NCBI GenBank assembly: GCA_048013815.1
Contig: CM106586.1
Coordinates: forward strand, 10,974,001-11,038,000
DNA from: Setoptus koraiensis
Taxonomy: Eukaryota; Animalia; Arthropoda
Direction of reading: 5' to 3'
DNA length: 64,000 nucleotides
Numbering within the stretch: position 1 is the stretch's first letter; every line of letters starts with the position of its first letter. Both the position numbers and the translations under genes were made by a program. The notes under the pieces are model-generated. The model was not told the origin of the DNA, did no database searches, and saw only the letters and a list, made by a program, of their open reading frames with translations. This document shows, one piece after another, positions 8,930-42,202 of the stretch.

Positions 8930-10388
8930 TCCGTTGGCGAGCCGGCGCCGGCAAGACCGATTCTGCGCCCGATCAGCCGGGCAACAACTTTGCCGCTTCT
9001 CAGACACACGCACACAGGAAGCACGACGGCGGCGGCCCGCCGAGGACGCTCCGCGTCTGGCCGGCGTCTGGCGAGCTGCGTCCCGTGAGCCGCGTCCCGT
9101 GAGCCGCGTCCCGTTGGCGTGCGTCCGGGTCTTGCGCTGCGCGTCAACAAGTGGCACCACTGCCGGGCTCATTGTTGCGCACTTGCGCTCAATGCGAGTC
9201 TCGTCTCGCCAGTTCTCGCCAATTGCGACTCGTCTCGTCGGAATTCGACGAGTCGCAATTGGCGGTTCGCGAGACCGCCCGTTCGGCGTGTCGTCCGCAT
9301 TCTCGGCGTTCGGTGCGTTCTCAGCCGAGCTGCGGCCGGTCGCCATTCTTCGCACACTCGCCGGCGAATTGTGCGGCCGGCGCGCTCAATCGGCGGCGCG
9401 CCGATCTCGTTATGGGAAAGCGGCCACTTTCCCTGCAACAACGACATTGGAGGCAACAACAACGACAGCAACAACAACAACAACAACAACAACAACAACG
9501 ACGGCAACAGCGGCAACAGCGGCGACGGCGACGACAGCGAAGGCATGAGAGAGCGCGGCCAGACCGCAGCGGCCCACGACGCCGACGAGGAAACGCCGGC
9601 CGATGCCGCCGTTGTTGTCGCTGTTGCCGCTGTTGCCGCTGTTGCGCAACAGCGTCCAACGCTGTCGCGCCGATGCGGCCGCCGGACACTGGTCACTCGG
9701 TCCGACTGAGTCAGGCGCATGCTGAAACACGGCACAGGTAACACAGGTGAGTGTCGCTAACGAGTGGCCGTACGAACAAGGTAGACGACGGACGACACAG
9801 GCTGCGCGGGTAGCCGCTCGGAACGATGCGAGGAGGGGCGCCCGATAGGGAAACAATTATCGTTGTCGTGGCGGAACAGGACGACCGCAACAAGCGCACA
9901 ATGGTCGCCATGCGAGCGGCCATAGGAACGGAAGAGCCGCTCGGTCGTGATCGCGCTTGCCGTGTCCGTCTGACCGGCGGCCAGACGGTGGCCGCATCAC
10001 CGGCGGCCAGACGGTGGCCGCATCACGCACGCCGCTCGCCGTGGCGACATCTTTTTGTGATAAAAATTTTATCCGTGCCGCTCATGCGCCACTCTCGTTC
10101 GGGCAGCGAATGACAGCCGAACTGGCCAGATGCGACGGATAATCGGGCGAGATGCGACAGATAATCGGGCGAGATGCGACGGGCGAATCGGGCGAGCGAC
10201 CGATGGCGACGACGCCAGATGTCGCGCCCGGTCGCAGGCGGCTCCTCGAGACGGTCGAAAGCGGCTTCTCGCGACAGCCGCAAACAGTTTCGCGAGACAG
10301 TCGCAAACAGTTTCGCCAAACTGTCGACTCGAGCGACGCTCATGTCGCACTGCCAACCGGTCCATCCGCCATCTGCCGTTCGCTCGGC

Positions 10389-21960: not shown

Positions 21961-24263
21961 TTATCCGCCACCGTGCGAGTAACCGGTTTTGTGAGCCGAC
22001 GCAGCCGCTGGCACGAGCTTATCTGTCTCTTCGAATCACCTCAAGGTCTGCCCACCTGTTAGAGCCGATTCGGCCGCCAGCCGGGCTCGGCCGCGAACCG
22101 GGCCGCGCGCTCACAGTCGGCGAGAGCGACTTCCTTGCGAACGGCGCTCGTTCTTTTCGCGTTCTATTCGCGTTCTTTTCTCGCCCGTCGCCGGCTGGCG
22201 GCCGGCGGCCCGATCGGGCCGCAGATAGGGCCGCGGACGGAGCCGGCGATGGGGGAGATAATAACGAGCGAGCAATCGTTAACTGTCAGGCGAGTCGGCG
22301 GGCATAAATCAACAGCGAGACGGATCAACCGACAGCGATCTGGCCCGGCCCGCACGCGCAATCGCTCTCGCTGCGGCCGGCCCGGCGCGACACTCGCGCA
22401 CACTTACGCACGATTGCGGACGCTGACGGACGCTCGCGTCGGCGGCCCTGGCCGCGGGCCATGTCCGCGCGGGCATCGCCTTGACCGGCGGGCGCGCCCC
22501 GCGGGCCGGCCGCTCGATCGAGCCGATTGGATCGACGGCGATGCACAACTGACAACAATACCCGCGCTGGCTCGAGCCGGGCAGCCTTGTGCGGCCAGAC
22601 TCTCTGGCCGCCAGAGATAATTGCCAGATTGGTCGCGCTCGATCCGGCTGCGCGGACCGGGCGCCAATCGGCGCCACTGGCACACAATGGCCCATTGAAT
22701 CGCGGGCAAGCCCGCTCAGATTCAGCGGCTGAATGGCAGCCAGGAAGTGCGCTCATGAAAGGGATGCGGATCGCTCGGCGCTGACCGCGCGGCCCGGGCT
22801 GCGTGCGGCGATTGGCAGCGGGTCGGAGCGGCCGCGCCGAGCCAAAACAACGCCGGCCGCGCCGATTGGAGGGGCCGATTGGGGGGGGGCAGCACGGCGA
22901 GACGGGTTGTTTGTTTGCTGGCGGCCGGTCGTCAAGGTTGCCCGTCACCTTGACGGGCGGCGATGCGAGTGCAAATTAACGGTATCACAAGACGGCGGCC
23001 AGTGGCGTTAATTGCCGCAAGCGTGATTAATGAGTGCGCGCGTTCCAATCATTTCAGCCGTCTCAATTGATGTGGGCCCAGCGTGTCGGGCCGGTTTCGC
23101 TATTGTTTGTTGTTGCTGCTTGCGATAAGTGATCGCGGCCGTCGAGTGTCGGCCGCGCAGCCACCGGCCATGCAACGGACCGGTTGCCGGCAGCCGGTCA
23201 CTGCAAACCCGTTGCCCGTCGGCCGTCGCCCGCTGCCCGTCGCCTGCTGCCCGTCCCGTTGTCACGGGCCCGGCCAAACGAATGCGCAACCGGAGAGATG
23301 CGGACCTGACAGCACACGCCTGGCAAGCGCTGTTGCCTGTGCGCATTGTCGGGGTTAGCGGCTGTCGGGCGAGCCGCCGGCAGCGGGCCGGCCATCGGGA
23401 CGGTGCGCGTTTCGAGCTAATTAGCAATTAGCCATTCAATCGGTCACACAATTGGTTGAACAATCGATCATACTGTGTCTTTATTTGGCCGCTGATTTGC
23501 GAGTGCGGGTGCGGGCGTCTTGCGGCCGCGCGGTACCCGCAGCCGGCCGTTCGCGGCCTGTTTTGTGTGGCCACGCAAAACGCAACGGGCGCACGATGGG
23601 AGCGCATTCCAGGCCGGCATTTGTCTGATAAAATTCATCATTTTGACCGTCGGCACCAGTGGTCGACATTGGGCTTCGACTCGAAACTCTCGATCGACTC
23701 GAAACTCTCGATCGGCTCGAAACTCTCGAGTCACTCGAATCGAGTGCGACACTTGTTGAATCGGCTGTTGTTGCTGCCGTTGTTGTTGCTGTCGCTGTTG
23801 TTGTCGCCGTCGTTGTTGTTGTCGTTGCCGTTGTCGTTGTTGAATGAGGCTGATTGTTGGATGAGCAAGCGGCACTTGGCAGTCAAATTATCCGCGCGAC
23901 AACCCGGCCCAAGCACGCCCACACGGGCTAGCTCGCCATGGGTCATTGTGTGCATTGTCACTCGAGGCTGTTGTTGTTGTTGTTAACTGGATGTTGTTGT
24001 TGTTAACTGGATGTTGTTGCTGCTAACTGGATGTTGTTGTTGTGCGCTCGACGTTGTTGCGATTCAATTCACAACATCGATTGTGACCGCTCAATTGGCA
24101 ATGTCAGCCGGCAATCAAATCAATTGAATTGGATCGCAAACACAGCGCCGAGAATCAACCAGAGCAATGCGATGATGAGCGACAATGAAAATCGGCTCAC
24201 CTGTGAGCCAATTCGAGCGACAGGGGTGGCCGTGGCTCGGCAAGGCTGGCCGTTGTTGTCGTT

Positions 24264-24295
<32 letters not shown>

Positions 24296-25500
24296 GGTTG
24301 CTGTCGTGGTTGCTGTTGGCCAACAACAGCGACAACAACAGCGCCAACAACAAATCGCCCGACAGTCGCCACTCAGGCTGGCAAGGCGAGCGCGTCTCAT
24401 TGTGTTGCGCAACGCCGGCCACAATCAGGTAGCGCAAATGTAACAATTTGCCAATTGGCATAATTGGCCAACCTTGATTAATTGCCGCCAGGCGGCCAGT
24501 CAATTGGTTGCACATGGCAACTTTGGCAAACAAAATTCGGCGGGTGCCCGATCAATCAACGGGCAGCGGCCCGACGCGCGCAACCCAGTGACTGAGCAGC
24601 TGAGCAAACAGCGGCTTTAATTAGCGGCCATTTAGTCACTGTCAATTCACAATTGTCAGTGTCTTCTGGCAATCGACGGTCGCATGCCCGCCGACTGCAG
24701 ACAATTGACCGATAATCGGGCCGGACCCGCCGACAGACGGTGGCCGAACGGGCCGCTCGAGCCGACAATTCGGCCAGCCCATTCGACTGACTGTTCGACT
24801 GACTGTTCGACTGTTCGGCCTGCAGCGACCGTCGCAATCCGACGCCCGAAACGGCCGAGAATGGGAGCGCGAACTGTCTGGCCCGTCGCCCGCCGCTCGC
24901 TCGACGACTGTCAGTCGGCTGGCGCCCTGTCAGCTGTTGCTGTCGGCCGTAAATAGCCTGTGTGGAGCCTGTCAATAGTGTCAGTGACGTCTGAATTAGC
25001 CGACCAATATCGCGTCTCATTGAATATTCATATATTCAGCGAGACCGCCGGGCCGGCCGACCGGCCCGGCGGCAGCAGCGACGGGCGAGCGGCGGCGCCG
25101 TCTCGGAATCATTGTCAGCGAGTCATAACTTTCGAGGTGGCGCAGGCCGCCGATCGATCGCATAATAATGCAATTTGCGCCCGAGCCCGGCCATTCCGCT
25201 CATATGTTTTCTCGCTCGCCGCCCATGGTTGCCAGCCGCGTCTCGGCGCTGGTGTGATGTTAATCAAATTGTCTGACACAACTCAAAACAACGACAGCAA
25301 CAACGACAGCAACAACAACGGCAACAACAACGGCAACAACAACGGCTCGCGAGCTGATGGACAGCGCCCGCCCGATTCAAGGTTAGCTGACGGCGCCGCG
25401 CTGTGCGCATTGTTGTCGAGTAATTGCCTGTCCGGCCCGATCCACTGTGTCTGTGCGTTCGCCGGGCGCCGTCGGGCGGTCGGCGGGTGAGCCCGGGTGA

Positions 25501-31963: not shown

Positions 31964-34068
31964 ATGGCAAACACAGATGAGGTTAAAGAGTTGACCATCA
32001 ATGCCATACTGATAGATGTATTCAGATTTCTTGTAAGCCAAGAACAAACGACCATCCTATTGGATAAATTGCAATCGGCAAATATCCTTGCAATTTCAAA
32101 CGAATCCACTTCAAAACAACAACAGACCACCAATGATAGCCAAACCACCACCACCAATACCAAGTCTGCGGCTCGTGCCAGAACAAATCTAACAATAAGA
32201 TGTCTAGATTTGAGTAGGATATTTGAAGAGAAGAAGATAGACCTTTACAAAAATGTTACACTCAATAATATGAATCAAGTTTTATTCGACAGAATACTGA
32301 TAGAGGACTATTCATCATGCCAGCAATTAGTTTCATTAAATATTTCGCCCTCGGCTCTCAACACACCAAATCTAGATTCTGAGTCGGTGGCTAACTCGTT
32401 TAATCCGGCCGACAGTCAGATATTGCGCTATTTATATGGCTGCTATTACAGGCTGCAACAAATCAAAAGTCAACAAAAGTTCAGCTCCTTGAAGGACCAA
32501 CTGACCTCAGTTGAAAACCTCATCATTGATCAGGTTCTACTTTATCTGATTCAACCAGATGTTTTTCCCGATAGAGAAAAACGATATAAAAGTGACGAAC
32601 AAGGAGGCTCACCTCCACTATTATTGAATTTGGTTACTCATTATCTGAAAAGTGCAGCCGAGTTGCATTGTGATATTATACAAAGATTTGTTGATACTAT
32701 CGGAGAACGAGGTGGAGCCAACTATGATTCAGATAGTTTATTTACTATTATCAAACCAATTTGCACTAGATTGTCACAATTGTTTGTGAAAATATCAATT
32801 GATGATCCAAAGGTACCGGAGCTAGTACAAATACTGAGAGTATTCGTACAAGAACCCAATATGGCGGTGGCGTTTATACAATTCAATTCACTTAGAATTG
32901 ACAATTCTGTAGCATACCAGAACACTCTGATTGGCTATCTACTCAGCGTGTCTTCACTACCTAGAACTAGCCAATCTAATTGTACATTTTTTCAGAATCC
33001 ATCTAGATTAGCGCAAAGTGAGCACAATTTTACGGAGACTCAAATAGGGCTTAAATTACAAACTATAGGAGCCGAGGCCCACAAACTATTCCATATCTTA
33101 CTTAAGATGCCTCAATCGCGCGGCCTCTTCTTGGAATGGCTCGGCAAGTGTTTGTATACATTTAAGGATAGAAAAAAGTTGTGGAGCAATCAATTACTTA
33201 TGGCCACTAGCACAATATCAGTGAACGACGGGTTTCTCATGAATTTACTTACCGCAATGTTGCATCTATGTGAACCGTTCGTAGGACCGTACAAAAGGAC
33301 GCTGGAAAACGCAGCCAGGTTGGACAGGAAATTGCTCAAGATAGATCCAAGATATTGCAAAATATCTACAGTACCTAAGTCAAATCAAGTCAAAAAACCG
33401 GGTGAATCAGGAGCGGCAGCAATAGAACAGCAGTCAAAATCATCCAACAATACAGCCCACTTTTTAGGTTTATGCGAAGAGACATTCTTTGTTGATGCTT
33501 CAGATGAAATTGCATCTTTCGAGCCTCAAGCGAATTTTATCAGCGAACTCGTCGACCTATGTATCTTGTGCTGAAATACTTGTGGGGAAAGCAACAGCAC
33601 AGGGCCAAGTTGATTGAACTTGCCGACGAAGCGGAACGTAATATTGAATCAGCAAGGCCACTTTTGTTTTTGCGCTTTATAAATCTTTTGATGAATGATG
33701 CCATCTTTTTGTTAGATGAAGCTCTTGGTTATATGAGTACATTAAGAGAGACACAAATCCAAAGAGGAACGGTGGAGTGGACGCAAATGTCAGAGCAACA
33801 GCGCGCTCAAGCTGAGGCTAACGCCAATCATGTTGGTAGACTAGCTAGATTTCATAATGTCCTTGGACTTTCAACAATTAGTACATTGGCATGGTTGACT
33901 ACCGAAGTAAAAACTATTTTTTCACATGCCACCCTCGTGGATAGAGTGGCCAATATGTTGAACTACTTTTTGGTTCATTTAGTTGGGCCTAAAATGAAAA
34001 ATTTCAAGGTCAAAGATCAAAACGAGTACGAGTTTGAACCTAAAGAGCTAGTTGGACTCTCCAACTAG
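31964..34068 (+). pseudogene. UBE4A: ubiquitin conjugation factor E4 A with a frameshifting internal deletion and loss of the U-box
   Basis: ORF 31964-33574 (to ANFISE) is fused at ~33548 out of frame to RRPMYLVLKYLW..FLRFINLLMNDAIFLLDEAL..MLNYFLVHLVGPK..FEPKELV. About 240 aa between NFISE and RRPMY are absent relative to the human protein as recalled, and the C-terminal U-box is missing. Confidence 0.9.
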
Positions 34069-34673
34069 AGCTCGTCTATGTTTGCCGGTTCGCGATTCTG
34101 CTGTGCCATTTGAGCTTCTTCTTGTATACGTGGGTCCATTTTGACAAAGTTGGCATAGTAACTTTTGGTGAAATCGGTCATTATATCCTGAGTGCATTCT
34201 GGCAATTCGCCACTCATCAGGCCTGGCGACCCCGAAAATACTGAGAAGGTGGGTACAATTGTGCCTGGTGCCAATATTGTATTGTCCGCAATCGCGCAAC
34301 AATTTTTCAAAACCGAGTGGCGTCCAATAACGCAATTCTTTCCTATGTGAACATATGAGCCAACTATAGAGGCATTAATTACGCTATTTTCACCAATAAA
34401 TACATGATCGCCTATTTGCATACCGAAGAACGCTACCCCTTTAGCGTATCTCTTGAAAGGCGGCCTGATGATAGCTTTGCTGCTTATTACACAATGGCGT
34501 CCTATTTTGACATTTGCCAGATCTCCTCTTATAATACCGTCTGACTGGATGAGAGTCTTCCCGTTCAACATGATATTCTGACTGCCACACAAAACCGATT
34601 TCCTACATACTTTGTTTCCCGAGGCAGTCTCAATGTAATTGGACGGATTGTAATATACAACTGGTGGTTCCAT
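34065..34673 (-). CDS. DCTN5: dynactin subunit 5 (p25), intronless, 202 aa
   Basis: [62 protein letters not shown], with hexapeptide left-handed beta-helix repeats. Confidence 0.96.
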
Positions 34674-34697
34674 TTTTGGTCTCTTTCGTTTTGGCGA

Positions 34698-34736
34698 TTA
34701 TCGTAGTAGGATGGAGCTTTGAAAATTGTGGCCCAT
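34698..34736 (-). other. TAF3-derived upstream ORF (MGHNFQSSILLR*) in the DCTN5 leader
   Basis: Inverted copy of the TAF3 start codon and first ~9 codons; it stops 24 nt before the DCTN5 ATG. Confidence 0.6.
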
Positions 34737-34859
34737 TTATGTGTGGCAATCAATAAATACAATCAATCTTGAAAGATTGTTGGTAAATATAGCGATAATG
34801 TGTTCCTCCAAATGGAGATTTTCAACAACAACAACAATAAAGCACTGCGGAATACGTAC

Positions 34860-34993
34860 GCTAGCCTCCACAGTTCATTTTTCGTGCAGCTGATTTCGAC
34901 TTTCTGTGCAATTCTCACCGAAGACAACCGAAGATAAGGCGACACAATGTCGGCACAGTGAGCACACGAAAAATACAATGTGGAGGCGCTTAC
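34860..34993 (-). mobile_element. 134-bp MITE/introner-like insertion present in only one palindrome arm
   Basis: Imperfect TIRs GCCTCCACAnnnnATTTTTCGTG at both ends, with a possible TAC target duplication (34857-59 / 34991-93). On the minus strand it begins CAG|GTAAGC and ends ..CTAGC. Confidence 0.55.
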
Positions 34994-35218
34994 CTGAAAT
35001 ACGAAAATTTTTATTCGGAAAATTCATGGCGCATAGTTTGAAATAAGTTTCACTCCTAGTGATGGGAGGCAGCTCCCCGAGCTTCCTCCCTGCCCCCGGG
35101 CGAGACGAGGGAGCAAGTCGGGGAGCAGGATATTTCTTGCTGCCTCCCATCACTAGAAGTGAAACTTATTTCAAACTATGCGCCATAAATTGTTCGAATA
35201 AAAATTTTCGTATTTCAG

Positions 35219-35307
35219 GTACGTATTCCGCAGTGCGTTATTGTTGTTGTTGAAAATCTCCATTTGGAGAAACACATTATCGCTATATTTACCAACAATC
35301 TTCCAAG
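35219..35307 (+). other. putative 5'-UTR intron of TAF3
   Basis: CAG|GTACGT donor at 35219 and CTTCCAAG| acceptor 31 nt upstream of the ATG; inferred from consensus only. Confidence 0.45.
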
Positions 35308-35338
35308 ATTGATTGTATTTATTGATTGCCACACATAA

Positions 35339-37579
35339 ATGGGCCACAATTTTCAAAGCTCCATCCTCAGGGTGGTGGTGGGCCAAGTGTGTGAAGCTGT
35401 CGGATACAATTCGATCACACAACAAAGTCTAGAAATTCTAGTAGATCTCCTCAGAAATAGAATTATACTTTATGGAAGTTTGTCTGCCGAGCTATGCAAC
35501 CTCAACTCGCGTGTGGAGCCGACCATTTACGATGTACTCAGAGCATTCAAACTTTTGCGAGTTTCCATAGATGGCCTACAGGATCATATATCAAACGTGG
35601 AAATACCTCCAATTCCACTCAAGATTCGTCCAAATTATCCGGCCAAACCGGTGAATAGAATACAGCGTCACCTATTGATTGATGACCTTTTGGAGGCAAC
35701 GAAAAACAAAGCTAACGTTTCTGACTCTGCGGCTGTCGATTCCGAAGAGGCCGCTCAACAGAATTCAACTCCTTCTTCGACTCTTATGAAAGACATGTTC
35801 GCCGATGTACTGAACAGTTTCAAAGATGTTGCCCCTGTTTCGGCTGACAAGACAATCAGGCCCCCTAGTCCCAGATCTGTTAGTACAGTTATCAAGATCA
35901 AGAAAACAGCCTCACCTTTACCTGATGAAAACAAGGTTGATCATTTGCTACACCAATCGACAACCTCCAGACCTAAGACTCTAGCCGAAAGAAAAGCTCT
36001 GCCTTTAGATTTAGATACAAAGAGCTTCTTAAAAATATCGAGGCGACAGATAGGTGAGAAAAAACGAGGCAGAAAATCTCTCAAAGAGACCAAGGAAAGA
36101 GAGAAAGAAGATCTTCGGGCCCTAAAGAAGAAGATGGCATCTAAGACCGTGATGAAAGCAGTCAAATTGAGCAAGAAGGAAAAGAGTTCCAAAGATAAAT
36201 CGAAGAAGATCAAAAAATCTTCATTGAATCAATCTCCTGGACATTCCCCTCTGCCCACAGATAATCCCATCAAGATCCCAAAGAAGAGAGGTCGAAAGCC
36301 CAAGAAAGATAAACTACTCGCAGAAGAGTCTGTCACCCCCCAAAAGAAAGTTGGGCGAGTAAAATCCGGTAAAAAACTAAAACTGGATAAGAGGCGCAAG
36401 AAGACGGGAGATAAAATGAAAGTGAAACTCGACAAGGAGAAATCCAAGAGTGAGAATAATGTAAATGATGATGCAGTCATTGATCCTGAGCAAGGTATCC
36501 CGGCAGATGAAATGGTCGACGTTCCTCCCAAAAAGATTGAAAAGAAGAGAGGCAGAAAATCCAAGAAAGAGTTAGAAGCTCTGGCTTTGGCGGAGCAAAA
36601 GGCACTTCTGGCCAAGATTGATTCCGAGGATGATAAACGAAGGGAACTAGAAATGGAGCAAGAAAAAAGATTAGAGAAGGAGAGAGAGGAGATGGAGAGG
36701 ACCAAGAGAGAGGAAGAGAAGGAGCGAGAAAGAGAAGTGGAGAGAGAAAAGGAAAGAGAAAAGGAGAGGGAGAGAGAAAGGGAAAGAGAGAAAAAAATAT
36801 TGGAATGGGAAAGAGAACAGCAAGAGAAGGAAAAAGAAAGGCAAAAAGAAAAAGAGCGAGAAGCAGAAGAAGAGAGGCAAAGAGAGAAAGAAAGAGAAAA
36901 GACCAAGACGAAGGACAGGGTCAAGGAGAAGGTGGACACGGGATTCTCCGGCGAAGTCACGAAGAAAAAGAAGAAAGCCGGAAAAGCTGGTCGCAAGAAA
37001 AAGAACCAATGCATTATTATTACAGAAACTGTCGATACAGAGGATGCTCCGCGAACTGACGAGCAAGAGTGGTTTTGTCCTGCTTGTGGTAAGGCTGATG
37101 ACGGTTCACTCATGTTAGAGTGCGAAACATGTAAGAATTGGTATCATTTCAGCTGCACTGCGTTGACCAAACAGCCAGACGAGGAAGAAGACTGGTTTTG
37201 TGATCTTTGTCTTCAAGCTGCTTTGAAATCGAAGCAATCCAAAGCGAAAGAGGTGAAAGTTTCAAAAGATCGAAGGGATTCTAAAGAGAACAAAGAAAAA
37301 AGCCGCGATCCAAAACCATCTACTTCCAAGGTGCCCACTGAAGTCATTCCTGAGGCCGCTGATTCAGATGATGCCGCTTGTCCTGTGTGTAATAAAACCG
37401 ACGACGGTTCTCTCATGCTTCAATGCGAGGATCCCGACTGTGCAAAGTGGTTTCATGGAAGTTGTGTAAATATTTATGTAACACCAAGTGAAACAGAGCC
37501 ATGGTTTTGTAAGAAATGCGTGGAGAAACAACAATTATACCTTAATACGGCCTATGACAAACGCAAGCGAAGGAAATGA
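35339..37579 (+). CDS. TAF3: TFIID subunit 3 (histone-fold BTP domain, K/E-rich linker, two PHD fingers), intronless, 746 aa
   Basis: N-terminal VVVGQVCEAVGYNSITQQSLEILVDLL..VEPTIYDVLRAF; PHD motifs WFCPACGKADDGSLMLECETCKNWYHFSC and CPVCNKTDDGSLMLQCEDPDCAKWFHGSC. Confidence 0.93.
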   Translation: MGHNFQSSILRVVVGQVCEAVGYNSITQQSLEILVDLLRNRIILYGSLSAELCNLNSRVEPTIYDVLRAFKLLRVSIDGLQDHISNVEIPPIPLKIRPNYPAKPVNRIQRHLLIDDLLEATKNKANVSDSAAVDSEEAAQQNSTPSSTLMKDMFADVLNSFKDVAPVSADKTIRPPSPRSVSTVIKIKKTASPLPDENKVDHLLHQSTTSRPKTLAERKALPLDLDTKSFLKISRRQIGEKKRGRKSLKETKEREKEDLRALKKKMASKTVMKAVKLSKKEKSSKDKSKKIKKSSLNQSPGHSPLPTDNPIKIPKKRGRKPKKDKLLAEESVTPQKKVGRVKSGKKLKLDKRRKKTGDKMKVKLDKEKSKSENNVNDDAVIDPEQGIPADEMVDVPPKKIEKKRGRKSKKELEALALAEQKALLAKIDSEDDKRRELEMEQEKRLEKEREEMERTKREEEKEREREVEREKEREKEREREREREKKILEWEREQQEKEKERQKEKEREAEEERQREKEREKTKTKDRVKEKVDTGFSGEVTKKKKKAGKAGRKKKNQCIIITETVDTEDAPRTDEQEWFCPACGKADDGSLMLECETCKNWYHFSCTALTKQPDEEEDWFCDLCLQAALKSKQSKAKEVKVSKDRRDSKENKEKSRDPKPSTSKVPTEVIPEAADSDDAACPVCNKTDDGSLMLQCEDPDCAKWFHGSCVNIYVTPSETEPWFCKKCVEKQQLYLNTAYDKRKRRK

Positions 37580-38470: not shown

Positions 38471-39895
38471 TTAAAAACAGTCCCCGTATGAAGCCGCGTC
38501 CTCAGCTGAAATTTGTTGGTTAGTTTTTCGTCTTCTCCTCACTGGATTGGCTTCACCTTTGATGTTCTTAGGCTTAGCGGCCTGTCTTTTCTTCTTATTC
38601 ATCTCCTTTTTTATTAATTCAGCTCTTAGTTTACGTCGAGCTTCGTCACGACTTATAGTAATTGCGGAAAATTGAGACATACAATCGTCGAGATCAGCTG
38701 CTTCATCTGGAATATCTGATTCGGAACATTGCTCATCACTAGAACGATCATGATCTACAATAGCATCCAACTGGGTATCTTGGCTATCTTCATTAATAAC
38801 TTGTAGATTGATAGAGAGCTCAGCATCGTCGACTTTTCCAACTTGAGCTTGAATTTCGTTCAAATTGCTCGCAGACCTTGTATTTTCCTCCGGGTTGTCT
38901 TCAACATCTGCTGATTCTAGGACATCTTTGAGGAACAACTCCATGGCGTCTGGCTCTTCTCTTACCACATCAATGTCGTCCCAAGTAGGTATGTTGTCGG
39001 AGGTATATCTGAATCTTTTTGCGAAAAACTCCACAATACAATTGACGTCTCTTTCGAAGTACTCTGGGGCTAGCTCATGATCTAGTCCCAGCATTTGGGG
39101 TAGATCAATTATTATTGGTACCAACTCTTCACAGGTGCCCGATTTCTCATTTTTTATTATGATGTTGAACTCGTTAAAATCTCCGTGAATCACTCTTGTT
39201 TCATTAGCGAATCGGAGGATCAACTCCATCAGTTTGTCGTACAAGTTGGCGATAATTTTATCTCTATTTGTTTCTTCGAAAGAATCCATAGTGAAATGAT
39301 TGAGTAAATGGCCATCGATCAATTCCATAACTACCACATGCCGATTATGATCTATTGGCTTTGGTACGGGTAGCTTTTTACAATGCATGTATCTCATAAA
39401 CTCGTATTCTCGTTGAGCCGCCTTTCTACTGAGATAGATCCAACTTGTTTTATTTTTACTCTTGGTATAAAAATCTCGTTTCTCCGACACCTTCCTGAAG
39501 CAGGTTCGTCCAAGACGATGAAACTTGATTGCATAATTGGTTGTTTGATCGGGAGACTGACAAATAAAGACATCACTCTCTTTGCCTACGCCAATTTGAT
39601 TGCCCACACCACCCAACACTTCTCTATGAGTAAGTGCATTCAAGGCGAGAAAATCGTAGCCATGATAAGTGAGACGGTAACCGTCATATCTCTTGCCTCT
39701 TTCGTAGGCTAATAATTTGTGCTTCGTGAGGTCCACCAATATTTTTCCACTGCCACCATACCTCAGTGTGGCTATTGAATTTATGAGTGGTCCAGGTACA
39801 AGTTCATGGTTTTTCATTCCCATTTCTACCGAGGTCAATATCTTGAAATCTTCGGCAGAAAGATAGCGTAATAAAGTTACATCCAATTTCACCAT
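38471..39895 (-). CDS. RIOK2: serine/threonine kinase RIO2, intronless, 474 aa
   Basis: VEMGMKNHELVP, GYRLTYHGYDFLAL, IGVGKESDV, AIKFHRLGRTCFR, IHGDFNEFN, IIDLPQM. Confidence 0.97.
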   Translation of the reverse strand: MVKLDVTLLRYLSAEDFKILTSVEMGMKNHELVPGPLINSIATLRYGGSGKILVDLTKHKLLAYERGKRYDGYRLTYHGYDFLALNALTHREVLGGVGNQIGVGKESDVFICQSPDQTTNYAIKFHRLGRTCFRKVSEKRDFYTKSKNKTSWIYLSRKAAQREYEFMRYMHCKKLPVPKPIDHNRHVVVMELIDGHLLNHFTMDSFEETNRDKIIANLYDKLMELILRFANETRVIHGDFNEFNIIIKNEKSGTCEELVPIIIDLPQMLGLDHELAPEYFERDVNCIVEFFAKRFRYTSDNIPTWDDIDVVREEPDAMELFLKDVLESADVEDNPEENTRSASNLNEIQAQVGKVDDAELSINLQVINEDSQDTQLDAIVDHDRSSDEQCSESDIPDEAADLDDCMSQFSAITISRDEARRKLRAELIKKEMNKKKRQAAKPKNIKGEANPVRRRRKTNQQISAEDAASYGDCF

Positions 39896-41170: not shown

Positions 41171-42202
41171 CTATTTGAGATTAAGACTGAGAAGAGGATG
41201 CAAAGGATTGATATATCCTATGAGTATCTTGTGGGCTCTGACAGTGGCCTCCTTCATGGCCATGATATCGTTTTTTCCCATACCCCAAGAGGTGACAACC
41301 GGGTATCTGTCCTCGTCCATCAGATGCAATAGACAATGATTATCGGATACAAATTCAAACTCGAACGATCCTGCCCAATCGTCTTGGATCCAAACATCGT
41401 GTATTAATTGATAAAATAGGTCGTCGTTTACATCATCGGTTTCGATGAGACAGATGTTATTAGCTAGCTCCTCAGTGGAATTGCCCAGAACCTTTTTAAC
41501 CACATCAGCTCTGTAGCGATTCCTTACAAATATGGAGTTATCTTCATGATCTATGTGTATTGCGCAAGCTATCGGATTGGCGGCACTTGGCTCGGCGTGT
41601 CTATCGTATACGTTGATACTTTCTAGTTTGGCCAACATCAGTTCGGCAGCTTGACGTTTGGCCAACTTTTTTGATCTACCTTCGCCTATTGTCATCTGAT
41701 TTAATCTATTGATCTTGCACGATATGCGGAATATTCGTTCATGAGCCAAGCCCTCCTCTTGATATGTATCATAATCGGGCGGATTAACTCTCAACTTCAT
41801 GCAAATCTCTTGAAGTTTACCAACTGGATTTGGCTCGCTAGTAGAATTTAACGATGCACTTGGTGGCGGACTTAGACTAGACAATGTGTCAAAATTGATA
41901 CCATCTATGCTGAGATCAGAGCGCATTCTGAGTTTATTGATTGCCTCTTTGGCTGCCGCGTGTCTTGCTTTCTTCTTGCTTTGTCCAGCAGCAGTTACAG
42001 TTATATTGTCAACAGTAACTGCCATCTTGAAGGTAGGTTCATGTACGCTACCTTCAGTGGATAGCAATTGATATTCGGCTGTCAAACCATTCCTAGAGCA
42101 TATCTCTTGTAATAATGTGATAGGTGGCGATTGTTTGCTAATAGAAATTTCCATTGGTATTGCGTTAGTTTCCGCGACAATCTTATCACAGCACTGCTGC
42201 AT
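41171..42202 (-). CDS. loqs: Loquacious/TRBP/PACT-like dsRNA-binding protein (2 canonical dsRBDs plus a degenerate third), 343 aa
   Basis: PITLLQEIC..EGSVHEPTFKM..GQSKKKARHAAA; NPVGKLQEIC..EGLAHERIF..GRSKKLAKRQAA; C-terminal type-B-like CLLHL..VVTSWGMG..EATVRA. Exact orthology (loqs vs r2d2/PACT) is uncertain. Confidence 0.82.
   Translation of the reverse strand: MQQCCDKIVAETNAIPMEISISKQSPPITLLQEICSRNGLTAEYQLLSTEGSVHEPTFKMAVTVDNITVTAAGQSKKKARHAAAKEAINKLRMRSDLSIDGINFDTLSSLSPPPSASLNSTSEPNPVGKLQEICMKLRVNPPDYDTYQEEGLAHERIFRISCKINRLNQMTIGEGRSKKLAKRQAAELMLAKLESINVYDRHAEPSAANPIACAIHIDHEDNSIFVRNRYRADVVKKVLGNSTEELANNICLIETDDVNDDLFYQLIHDVWIQDDWAGSFEFEFVSDNHCLLHLMDEDRYPVVTSWGMGKNDIMAMKEATVRAHKILIGYINPLHPLLSLNLK

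Follow-up and report, generated by a model that had tools for sequence, protein, structure and literature searches.

Several known systems resemble parts of the locus analyzed here. Ordinary bidirectional promoters serve two divergent housekeeping genes that are <1 kb apart and have all of their regulatory DNA in the gap. Head-to-head genes separated by 665 bp commonly share regulatory DNA. Inverted duplication of a target can also give rise to hpRNA and miRNA genes, in which an inverted duplicate of part of a gene is able to fold as long dsRNA; hpRNA loci are known in Drosophila (PMC10317233). New inverted repeats are produced by SD-MMEJ (synthesis-dependent microhomology-mediated end joining), a Pol theta-type repair, when a short inverted repeat near a break primes snap-back synthesis on its own strand and the unwound product is joined to the other end, leaving longer inverted repeats (PMC5728401, PMC2943611). 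One side of the product carries a small-looped inverted repeat, and the other a new junction, usually with a deletion. Replication template switching at short inverted repeats (ODIRA and fold-back inversions) generates, in a single step, inverted copies that meet at a short interrupted palindrome (PMC10766183). No paper was found in the literature on promoter capture by inverted duplication between head-to-head neighbors.

Almost the whole region between DCTN5 and TAF3 in the gall mite Setoptus koraiensis is a 660-base palindrome. It seems reasonably likely that this palindrome is a real, lineage-specific fold-back duplication of the 5' end of TAF3, and that DCTN5 is transcribed from the mirror copy of the promoter. 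The features are listed below by position in the window, which is the whole 64-kb stretch of DNA that was analyzed.

34065–34673, minus strand: DCTN5 (dynactin p25) CDS, 202 aa plus stop, single exon, Pfam PF21711
34674–34707, minus strand: DCTN5's own upstream sequence, 34 nt from the ATG to the outer end of the left arm
34698–34736, minus strand: uORF, the mirror of the TAF3 start (ATG and codons 2–10, then L, R and stop)
34708–34859: left arm, outer block, repeating the proximal upstream region of TAF3 and its codons 1–10 in inverted orientation, with the CAA indel at 34823–34825
34857–34990: 134-nt insertion in the left arm only, an internal piece (positions 44–177) of a TA-flanked hairpin MITE of ~226 nt
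34991–35091: left arm, inner block and innermost stem, from the alignment
34991–35071 with 35141–35221, and 35072–35091 with 35108–35126: stem pairing within the inner block, from the alignment
35092–35107: central loop, 16 nt, GC-rich, CCCGGG at 35095–35100, from the gapped alignment and MFE structures
35108–35367: right arm, the source, with the upstream region, leader, ATG and codons 1–10 of TAF3, contiguous with the TAF3 ORF
35127–35140: 14-nt stretch of the right arm with no left-arm partner in the alignment
35339–37579, plus strand: TAF3 CDS, 746 aa, with an N-terminal Bromo_TP histone fold and two PHD fingers

DCTN5 and TAF3 are essential housekeeping genes. Both are intact and single-copy, each having one match in the whole genome. 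DCTN5 matches PF21711 with 294.7 bits, residues 5–178 aligning with positions 5–178 of the 182 in the model, and TAF3 matches PF07524 at residues 5–73 and PF00628 in two stretches. The genes are head-to-head, with DCTN5 on the minus strand and TAF3 on the plus strand, and their start codons (34673 and 35339) have 665 bp between them, within the 1-kb limit of a bidirectional promoter. In length, the palindrome takes up 660 of these 665 bases.

The inverted repeat that had been predicted at 34708–35367 is present at exactly those coordinates. A gapped alignment gives 249 paired columns with eight substitutions (96.8% identity) and a 16-nt loop. The region and its own reverse complement have 287 12-mers in common, whereas 200 shuffles gave 2.3 on average and 15 at most, which places the palindrome far beyond chance. 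The fold z-score is -40 as DNA and -58 as RNA, with an RNA fold of -466 kcal/mol, and the palindrome is the sole long inverted repeat in the whole window that is not of low complexity. Positions 34708–34859 pair with 35219–35367 with three substitutions and the CAA indel, and positions 34991–35073 pair with 35139–35221 with four substitutions. These two block pairs agree with the original prediction of about 230 bp, seven substitutions and one CAA indel; the gapped alignment carries the pairing inward to the center. A nested GC-rich hairpin had been proposed at 35072–35126, but this segment is not a feature of its own; it forms the inner end of the palindrome and is out of register by the 14-nt insertion found only on the right (35127–35140). 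Overall, the arms differ by eight substitutions and four indels, one of which is the 134-nt insertion. A search of Rfam revealed no known RNA gene in the palindrome at E <= 1, and no tRNAs are present. One DRE-like TTATCG core is present per arm and another in the DCTN5 leader, in a window that has a mild excess of this motif (54 compared to 37 expected).

The 134 nt at 34857–34990 of the left arm, which have no partner in the right arm, were missing from the original prediction. This piece is 100% identical over its full length to a sequence 0.9 Mb away (G000:C2:11915987-11916120) and belongs to a multi-copy family with at least 15 matches in the genome at 80–100% identity. The boundaries, terminal inverted repeats and TA flanks of the parent MITE were defined from five full-length copies of ~226 nt. 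The piece lacks both terminal inverted repeats and the TA duplication of this Stowaway-like family, and is flanked by TAC or by nothing. The TAC at the junction is ambiguous, being consistent with an insertion of 131 nt with a 3-nt duplication or with blunt capture of 134 nt. An introner-like element was considered and ruled out, because the family terminal repeats and TA duplication are absent and because GTAAG arises at the junction rather than being brought by the element.

The genome carries hairpin MITEs, and the palindrome is itself a near-complete hairpin of MITE-like size, as expected if a transposon of the foldback type, or a MITE, had landed in the gap and formed the entire structure. 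Such an origin is scarcely credible. In the 48.76-Mb genome searched, the arms have no match outside this locus, whereas a transposon would have dispersed copies. A target-site duplication is absent: the sequence at 34707 differs from that at 35368, and what borders the palindrome on the right is coding sequence of TAF3. Moreover, the arm ends are coding sequence of a conserved domain of TAF3.

The differences between the arms also bear on whether the palindrome exists in the animal. An assembly of S. koraiensis, probably the one analyzed here, comprises two chromosomes with an N50 of 24.53 Mb, and was produced from unamplified DNA of >100,000 mites with 496x PacBio CLR coverage and PCR-free Illumina polishing (PMC11920263). 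A fold-back or haplotype chimera could arise during library preparation, from a missed SMRTbell adapter, or in the Flye assembly of a pooled wild sample, and the 1.13% heterozygosity of the pooled sample and the noise of CLR reads give this explanation some weight. In addition, independent sequence of the locus was not found in exact-protein look-ups with DCTN5 and TAF3 or in two metagenome scans with the left junction and the DCTN5 start, a negative result of little weight. However, if the assembly is the one described, the library had no amplification step, and reads with a missed adapter are perfect palindromes at the read level and a minority at 496x coverage. A chimera, which typically follows amplification, would have identical arms and a single chimeric junction; the arms here differ by 3.2% and four indels, including the 134-nt insertion, and an artifact would have to create two new junctions, flanked by intact genes and inside a contig of chromosome scale. 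The window shows no general tendency to palindromes, and an artifact cannot yield the older, more diverged palindromes (81–92% identity) at other loci described below. An artifact is therefore very unlikely. The earlier argument that arm divergence speaks against an amplification chimera stands, and it gains force in that the assembly was probably made from DNA that had not been amplified.

As had been suggested, the DCTN5 upstream region was compared in relatives, represented by five DCTN5-bearing Logan contigs with 76–84% amino acid identity in DCTN5. None of the five has an upstream inverted repeat and none has an adjoining TAF3, indicating that the palindrome is a derived state. DCTN5 adjoins a CKS and/or cyclin gene in four of the five relatives, and CKS is 385 kb from DCTN5 in S. 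koraiensis. The five relatives share no non-coding similarity with the locus and are too distant for the ancestral intergenic sequence to be rebuilt. A word search for relatives of TAF3 with residues 1–130 gave no match at E <= 1e-5.

The sequence supports the left arm as the copy and the TAF3 side as the source. Since the Bromo_TP fold begins at residue 5, codons 1–10 are ancestral to TAF3, and they are contiguous with the right arm. The right arm ends at 35367, the second base of codon 10, which mirrors to 34708; as originally described, the left arm ends in TAF3 codon 10 and is followed by the DCTN5 leader, with the new junction at 34707/34708. The copied reading frame breaks off there, enters the DCTN5 leader and reaches a stop after 12 codons. 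The locus has the form of a fold-back duplication, with inverted arms of high identity, a short spacer, one arm continuous with the source gene, and the other ending at a new junction. DCTN5, although intact, retains no more than 34 nt of native upstream sequence, and so TAF3-derived DNA must hold its proximal promoter. The proposal that inverted duplication gave DCTN5 a new promoter and UTR is upheld with respect to the direction of copying, and use of the promoter is strongly suggested. Thus, DCTN5 probably now runs on a copy of the TAF3 promoter.

In the arm alignment, a position p of the outer block mirrors to 70075 minus p, and the TAF3 ATG at 35339 thus mirrors to 34736, the start of the uORF. 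Its 12 codons are translated as MGHNFQSSILLR before the stop, which is 24 nt ahead of the DCTN5 ATG, and the ATG context has A at -3 and G at +4, as at the real TAF3 start. If the promoter was captured, the DCTN5 mRNA would have a TAF3-like leader with the uORF as a fossil TAF3 start. A uORF in strong context 24 nt before the ATG is expected to lower translation of DCTN5, which argues for a transcription start site downstream of the uORF, or for a cost. The candidate 5'-UTR intron of the original prediction, with a supposed donor at 35219 and at its mirror, is unsupported, consisting of GT/AG-compatible motifs only.

Alternatively, a real palindrome may have only lengthened a bidirectional promoter region, with the left-arm copy having no promoter role. 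DCTN5 would then be driven by elements that it already shared with TAF3, in the center or right arm, or by a chance core promoter at the arm end and 34-nt leader. The 665-bp head-to-head spacing fits shared regulatory DNA, and inclusion of the uORF in the mRNA would be harmful. The arms are also young (96.8% identity), so the conservation of the copy is uninformative on function. However, although the copy increased the distance of DCTN5 from any central element by ~400 bp, the gene is intact and has a single copy. The core promoter and start site of TAF3, whatever they are, lie within the copied segment and now face DCTN5, and the same architecture elsewhere in the genome uses the ATG of the neighbor itself, as in the DAD1 ORF, which starts in the copy. 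A copy that is a passenger is a possibility to be kept in mind, but an unlikely one, and transcription of DCTN5 from the copied promoter remains the preferred explanation.

The DCTN5-TAF3 palindrome had been treated as a one-off, but the same layout is found at the DAD1 and eIF3g loci, indicating a recurrent class in this genome. Like DCTN5-TAF3, both have head-to-head genes, a palindromic gap, and outer arms that extend into the first codons of the source gene. At the DAD1 locus (L021), which was checked in full, the ATG at 1827 on the minus strand mirrors the ATG of the neighbor at 2553 on the plus strand; the outer arms are 122 nt with 92% identity, nested blocks reach the center, and the DAD1 ORF begins inside the copy of the neighbor's start. 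DAD1 has lost its own start and uses the copied ATG, resulting in a chimeric N-terminus, whereas the DCTN5 CDS is untouched and the copied ATG is a uORF. At the eIF3g/PNPT1 locus (L022), checked for repeat layout only, nested inverted repeats span 868–1449 and extend into the start of the eIF3g ORF. The DCTN5-TAF3 arms are the least diverged, with 96.8% identity compared to 81–92% at the other loci. At each of the three loci the outer blocks have the higher arm-to-arm identity, with too few differences for significance. Two further candidates, L016 (AP-4/E2F) and L018, have no nucleotide inverted repeat of at least 40 nt at the coordinates derived.

The original prediction also linked the palindrome to dsRNA. 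In an hpRNA-like locus, a transcript crossing the center would form ~250 bp of dsRNA and yield endo-siRNAs against the leader shared by TAF3 and DCTN5. The arms are long inverted repeats derived from the 5' end of a gene, the RNA fold is extreme, and a gene for a dsRBD protein is within the window. This gene is real (41174–42202), but it is on the far side of RIOK2, at a distance of 6 kb in a gene-dense genome, and no evidence ties it to the palindrome. Transcripts that start in each arm hold one arm only, and their leaders are near-identical in sense rather than complementary; hence, dsRNA would need a transcript across the center. Silencing of two essential housekeeping genes would also be costly. 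Together these points make an hpRNA-like role highly improbable, and the proposed link to long dsRNA and Dicer is unsupported. Cruciform extrusion at the palindrome is a thermodynamic possibility only.

The most likely origin of the palindrome, as inferred from its structure, is long snap-back (fold-back) break repair. The process would start with a break between DCTN5 and TAF3, followed by resection. The 3' tail on the TAF3 side would fold onto itself at a short inverted microhomology close to what is now the CCCGGG center, prime ~250 nt of synthesis along its own strand, unwind, and join the trimmed DCTN5 end. In this way ~260 bp of the TAF3 5' end, including the proximal upstream region, leader, ATG and first 9.7 codons, would have been duplicated as a mirror image and attached on the DCTN5 side, 34 nt before the DCTN5 start codon. 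The arms would later have diverged by eight substitutions and small indels, and the left arm would have gained the 134-nt internal MITE fragment lacking terminal inverted repeats. Replication template switching would yield the same product, and gene conversion between the arms could make the event look younger than its true age.

Promoter capture predicts that DCTN5 and TAF3 are co-expressed, that their unrelated mRNAs have near-identical leaders, and that their transcription start sites are mirror images of each other. Survival of promoter loss by an old essential gene is rarely visible, and here it would be readable base by base, from the source, copy and loop to the outer junction, which is 34 nt from the start of DCTN5, and the fossil start codon of TAF3. 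As a lone locus, DCTN5-TAF3 would be a clean example and not a new principle; together with the other loci of the same design, it raises the possibility that a repair signature, long fold-back synthesis between head-to-head genes, shapes gene regulation in very compact genomes. A more far-reaching view, quite doubtful as a whole, is that DCTN5-TAF3 is the youngest readable product of systematic, unusually long snap-back repair of breaks between head-to-head genes in a streamlined genome, by which the promoter and leader of one gene are repeatedly replaced by a mirror copy of those of its neighbor, that DCTN5, a dynactin subunit, shares transcriptional and translational (leader and uORF) control with TAF3, a TFIID subunit, and that occasional transcripts across the center feed a ~250-bp hairpin to RNAi.

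Finally, the locus shares features with each of the known systems and differs from each. Like SD-MMEJ products, it has a small-loop inverted repeat on one side and a new junction on the other, as would result from priming on its own strand; however, documented SD-MMEJ tracts are a few to tens of nucleotides compared to ~250 nt here, where the enzyme and the break are inferred. As in ODIRA and fold-back inversions, inverted copies meet at a short interrupted palindrome with a putative single-step origin, but ODIRA gives large inverted triplications or extrachromosomal amplicons around an origin (PMC10766183), rather than one small in-place copy. The palindrome resembles hpRNA and miRNA genes that arise from inverted target duplication in being an inverted part-gene duplicate able to fold as long dsRNA. 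It differs in that the copy sits where a promoter must be, and a transcript of both arms and small RNAs are conjectural. As with ordinary bidirectional promoters, the divergent housekeeping genes are less than 1 kb apart with all regulatory DNA between them. Ordinary bidirectional promoters are not mirror duplicates, whereas at this locus a single promoter exists in two copies, one facing each gene, and one of the copies retains the start codon of the other gene.

The palindrome at 34708-35367, between the head-to-head genes DCTN5 and TAF3, is real: a fold-back duplication that is young and specific to this lineage. The gap between the two ATGs is 665 bp and the palindrome takes up 660. The features of the locus are as follows.

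34673-34068, minus strand: DCTN5 (dynactin subunit 5) ORF; PF21711, 294.7 bits, residues 5-178 on model positions 5-178
35339-37579, plus strand: TAF3 ORF; Bromo_TP histone fold at residues 5-73 and two PHD fingers
34708-34859 paired with 35219-35367, inverted: outer block of the palindrome (sequence of 34400-35700 and repeat finder)
34991-35073 paired with 35139-35221, inverted: inner block (same sources)
35092-35107: loop of 16 nt with CCCGGG inside (gapped alignment)
34823-34825: CAA indel, left arm only
34857-34990: 134-nt indel, left arm only
35081: 1-nt indel, left arm only
35127-35140: 14-nt indel, right arm only

When the left half was aligned, with gaps, to the reverse-complemented right half, pairing was seen to reach the centre, with 249 paired columns, eight substitutions (96.8% identity) and four asymmetric indels between the arms. 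The original prediction counted about 230 bp, seven substitutions and one CAA indel, which is correct for the two main blocks; its "nested GC-rich hairpin" at 35072-35126 is not a separate feature, but the innermost segment of the palindrome itself, shifted by the 14-nt indel. The palindrome signal is far above chance: 287 12-mers are common to the palindrome and its own reverse complement (shuffle mean 2.3), and the fold z-scores are -40 for DNA and -58 for RNA. Besides (CAA)n/(GTT)n low complexity, it is the sole long inverted repeat in the 64-kb window. Coding-type low-complexity tracts of (CAA/CAG)n and (GTT/GCT)n that face each other, at 544-1814, 9496-9645 and 23764-25346, accounted for many weak inverted-repeat calls; as palindromes these were rejected as composition effects.

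It is very improbable that the palindrome is an artefact of assembly. The Setoptus koraiensis assembly was made from unamplified DNA of >100,000 pooled wild mites and comprises two chromosomes, assembled with Flye from 496x PacBio CLR and polished with PCR-free Illumina reads (PMC11920263). If the assembly used here is that one, amplification fold-backs are excluded. CLR reads with a missed adapter would each form a perfect palindrome, and at 496x coverage the other reads would outvote them. An artefact would also require a pair of novel junctions, both placed between two intact genes. The divergence of the arms (3.2% and four indels) is greater than the heterozygosity of the sampled population, 1.13% (PMC11920263), and the earlier argument that this divergence speaks against an amplification chimera holds.

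TAF3 residues 5-10 lie within the conserved domain and the right arm runs into the ORF, indicating that the left arm was copied from the right. As originally predicted, the left arm ends in TAF3 codon 10, at the mirror of its second base, and is followed by the DCTN5 leader, with an unrelated 34 nt (34674-34707) before the DCTN5 ATG. Translation of the copy in the DCTN5 direction gives a uORF, MGHNFQSSILLR-stop (34736-34698), whose start context, A(-3)/G(+4), is that of the genuine TAF3 start; its end is 24 nt ahead of the DCTN5 ATG. The TAF3 PHD fingers are at residues ~580-624 and ~680-716, and the protein has a long Lys/Glu/Arg-rich low-complexity middle; because of this stretch, a spurious ORF of 294 aa appears on the antisense strand at 36229-37113. 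To the left of DCTN5, a UBE4/Ufd2-type gene (31964-34068) is broken into two overlapping ORFs covering Ufd2P_core positions 2-165 and 410-567, with the middle of the core missing and the frame shifted. The second ORF and DCTN5 lie tail to tail, and their stops share 4 nt.

DCTN5 and TAF3 each match the 48.76-Mb genome at a single place. In a whole-genome search with the 660-nt query, the arms match only themselves, and the palindrome as a whole is not a transposon. Query positions 150-283 (window 34857-34990) matched at least 15 other places, and this 134-nt piece of the left arm is 100% identical to C2:11915987-11916120, 0.9 Mb away on the same contig. Comparison of copies with their flanks identified the source as a hairpin-forming family of ~226 nt, the whole length of which folds as one hairpin (-119 kcal/mol). 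With its terminal inverted repeats and TA flanks, the family is Stowaway-like.

G000:C2:11915944-11916172 (L004:1458-1686): copy of the ~226-nt MITE; further copies in genomic loci L005, L007, L008 and L009

The copies in L004 and L005 are within a 606-bp segmental duplication (97% identical, 15 kb apart). The window piece comprises element positions 44-177 only; transposition was rejected as its source, since both terminal repeats and the TA duplication are absent. Compared as filled and empty site, the arms differ either by a blunt 134-nt insertion or by 131 nt accompanied by a duplicated TAC. We take the piece to be a fragment that was acquired at a break, by capture or by copying, which speaks against viewing it as an introner-like TIR element. 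It matches a distant copy perfectly, yet the arms differ by 3.2%, so the capture is younger than the palindrome.

The nearest DCTN5 proteins found share 76-84% identity with this one, and five DCTN5-bearing Logan contigs among these were compared. Examination of the DCTN5 upstream region in relatives, a check proposed with the original prediction, found the palindrome absent from all five: in none is TAF3 beside DCTN5 or an inverted repeat upstream of it. Nucleotide similarity to the window ends at the DCTN5 start. In four of the five (L011, L012, L024 and L026) DCTN5 adjoins a CKS and/or cyclin gene, whereas here CKS is at C2:10623332-10623532, on the same chromosome but 385 kb from DCTN5, indicating that the surroundings of DCTN5 were rearranged in this lineage. 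This suggests that the DCTN5-TAF3 adjacency and the palindrome are a derived state, the five relatives being too distant to represent the immediate "before" state.

Only 34 nt upstream of DCTN5 are native, and past the palindrome there is only TAF3 coding DNA; the DCTN5 promoter must therefore lie within TAF3-derived sequence. Most simply, this promoter would be the mirrored TAF3 proximal promoter, and the fold-back duplication very probably re-promotered DCTN5. Of the proposal that an inverted TAF3 front end was captured as the DCTN5 promoter, the observation is confirmed by alignment and the interpretation is supported in part. If both genes start in their own arms, the leaders would be near-identical in sense rather than complementary, so that dsRNA would need a centre-crossing transcript. 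A putative 5'-UTR intron is supposed from GT/AG-compatible motifs: a donor-like CAG|GTACGT at 35216-35224 and, at its mirror, a GTAAGC created by the captured fragment. Downstream of TAF3, 41174-42202 (minus) encodes a 343-aa protein with two dsrm domains (Loquacious/TRBP/R2D2-like), and the RIOK2 kinase gene (38474-39895, minus) is between it and the palindrome. No connection of either gene with the palindrome was found.

The DCTN5-TAF3 palindrome is a member of a recurrent class in this genome. At DAD1 (L021), the PF02109 match begins only at residue 12, and the ATG (1827, minus) mirrors that of the neighbour (2553, plus) exactly. Both ATGs are inside a 122-nt inverted repeat (92% identical), with nested blocks of 87% and 81% on to the centre. 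At eIF3g (L022), nested inverted repeats over 868-1449 reach into the ORF. Inverted repeats were also found at URM1 (L017), L019, L020 and RpS11/EF-hand light-chain (L023); L016 and L018 had none at the threshold used (at least 40 nt). The L019 repeat (G000:C2:24195953-24197473; arms 553-918 and 1708-2073) is 366 nt and 96% identical with a 789-nt spacer, and its arms have no obvious coincidence with starts of large ORFs. Compared with DAD1 and eIF3g, the other two loci measured, the DCTN5-TAF3 palindrome has diverged least and is the one whose recipient kept an intact coding sequence.

Finally, the results show a source arm, a loop, a mirror copy that breaks off inside the source gene, and next to it a novel junction beside a gene whose own upstream DNA is lost. 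They also show that the arms and both genes are single-copy, which way the copying went, and that the arms were modified later. A break between DCTN5 and TAF3 was probably repaired via snap-back priming by the TAF3-side 3' tail; the tail would then have been extended by about 250 nt, unwound and joined onto a trimmed DCTN5 end. Replication template switching would yield the same product (PMC10766183). The locus is a clean example of a process recurring in this genome, and the kind of rearrangement is already known. Snap-back SD-MMEJ is a described repair geometry (PMC5728401); the geometry of the palindrome is alike, but the tract here is much longer.
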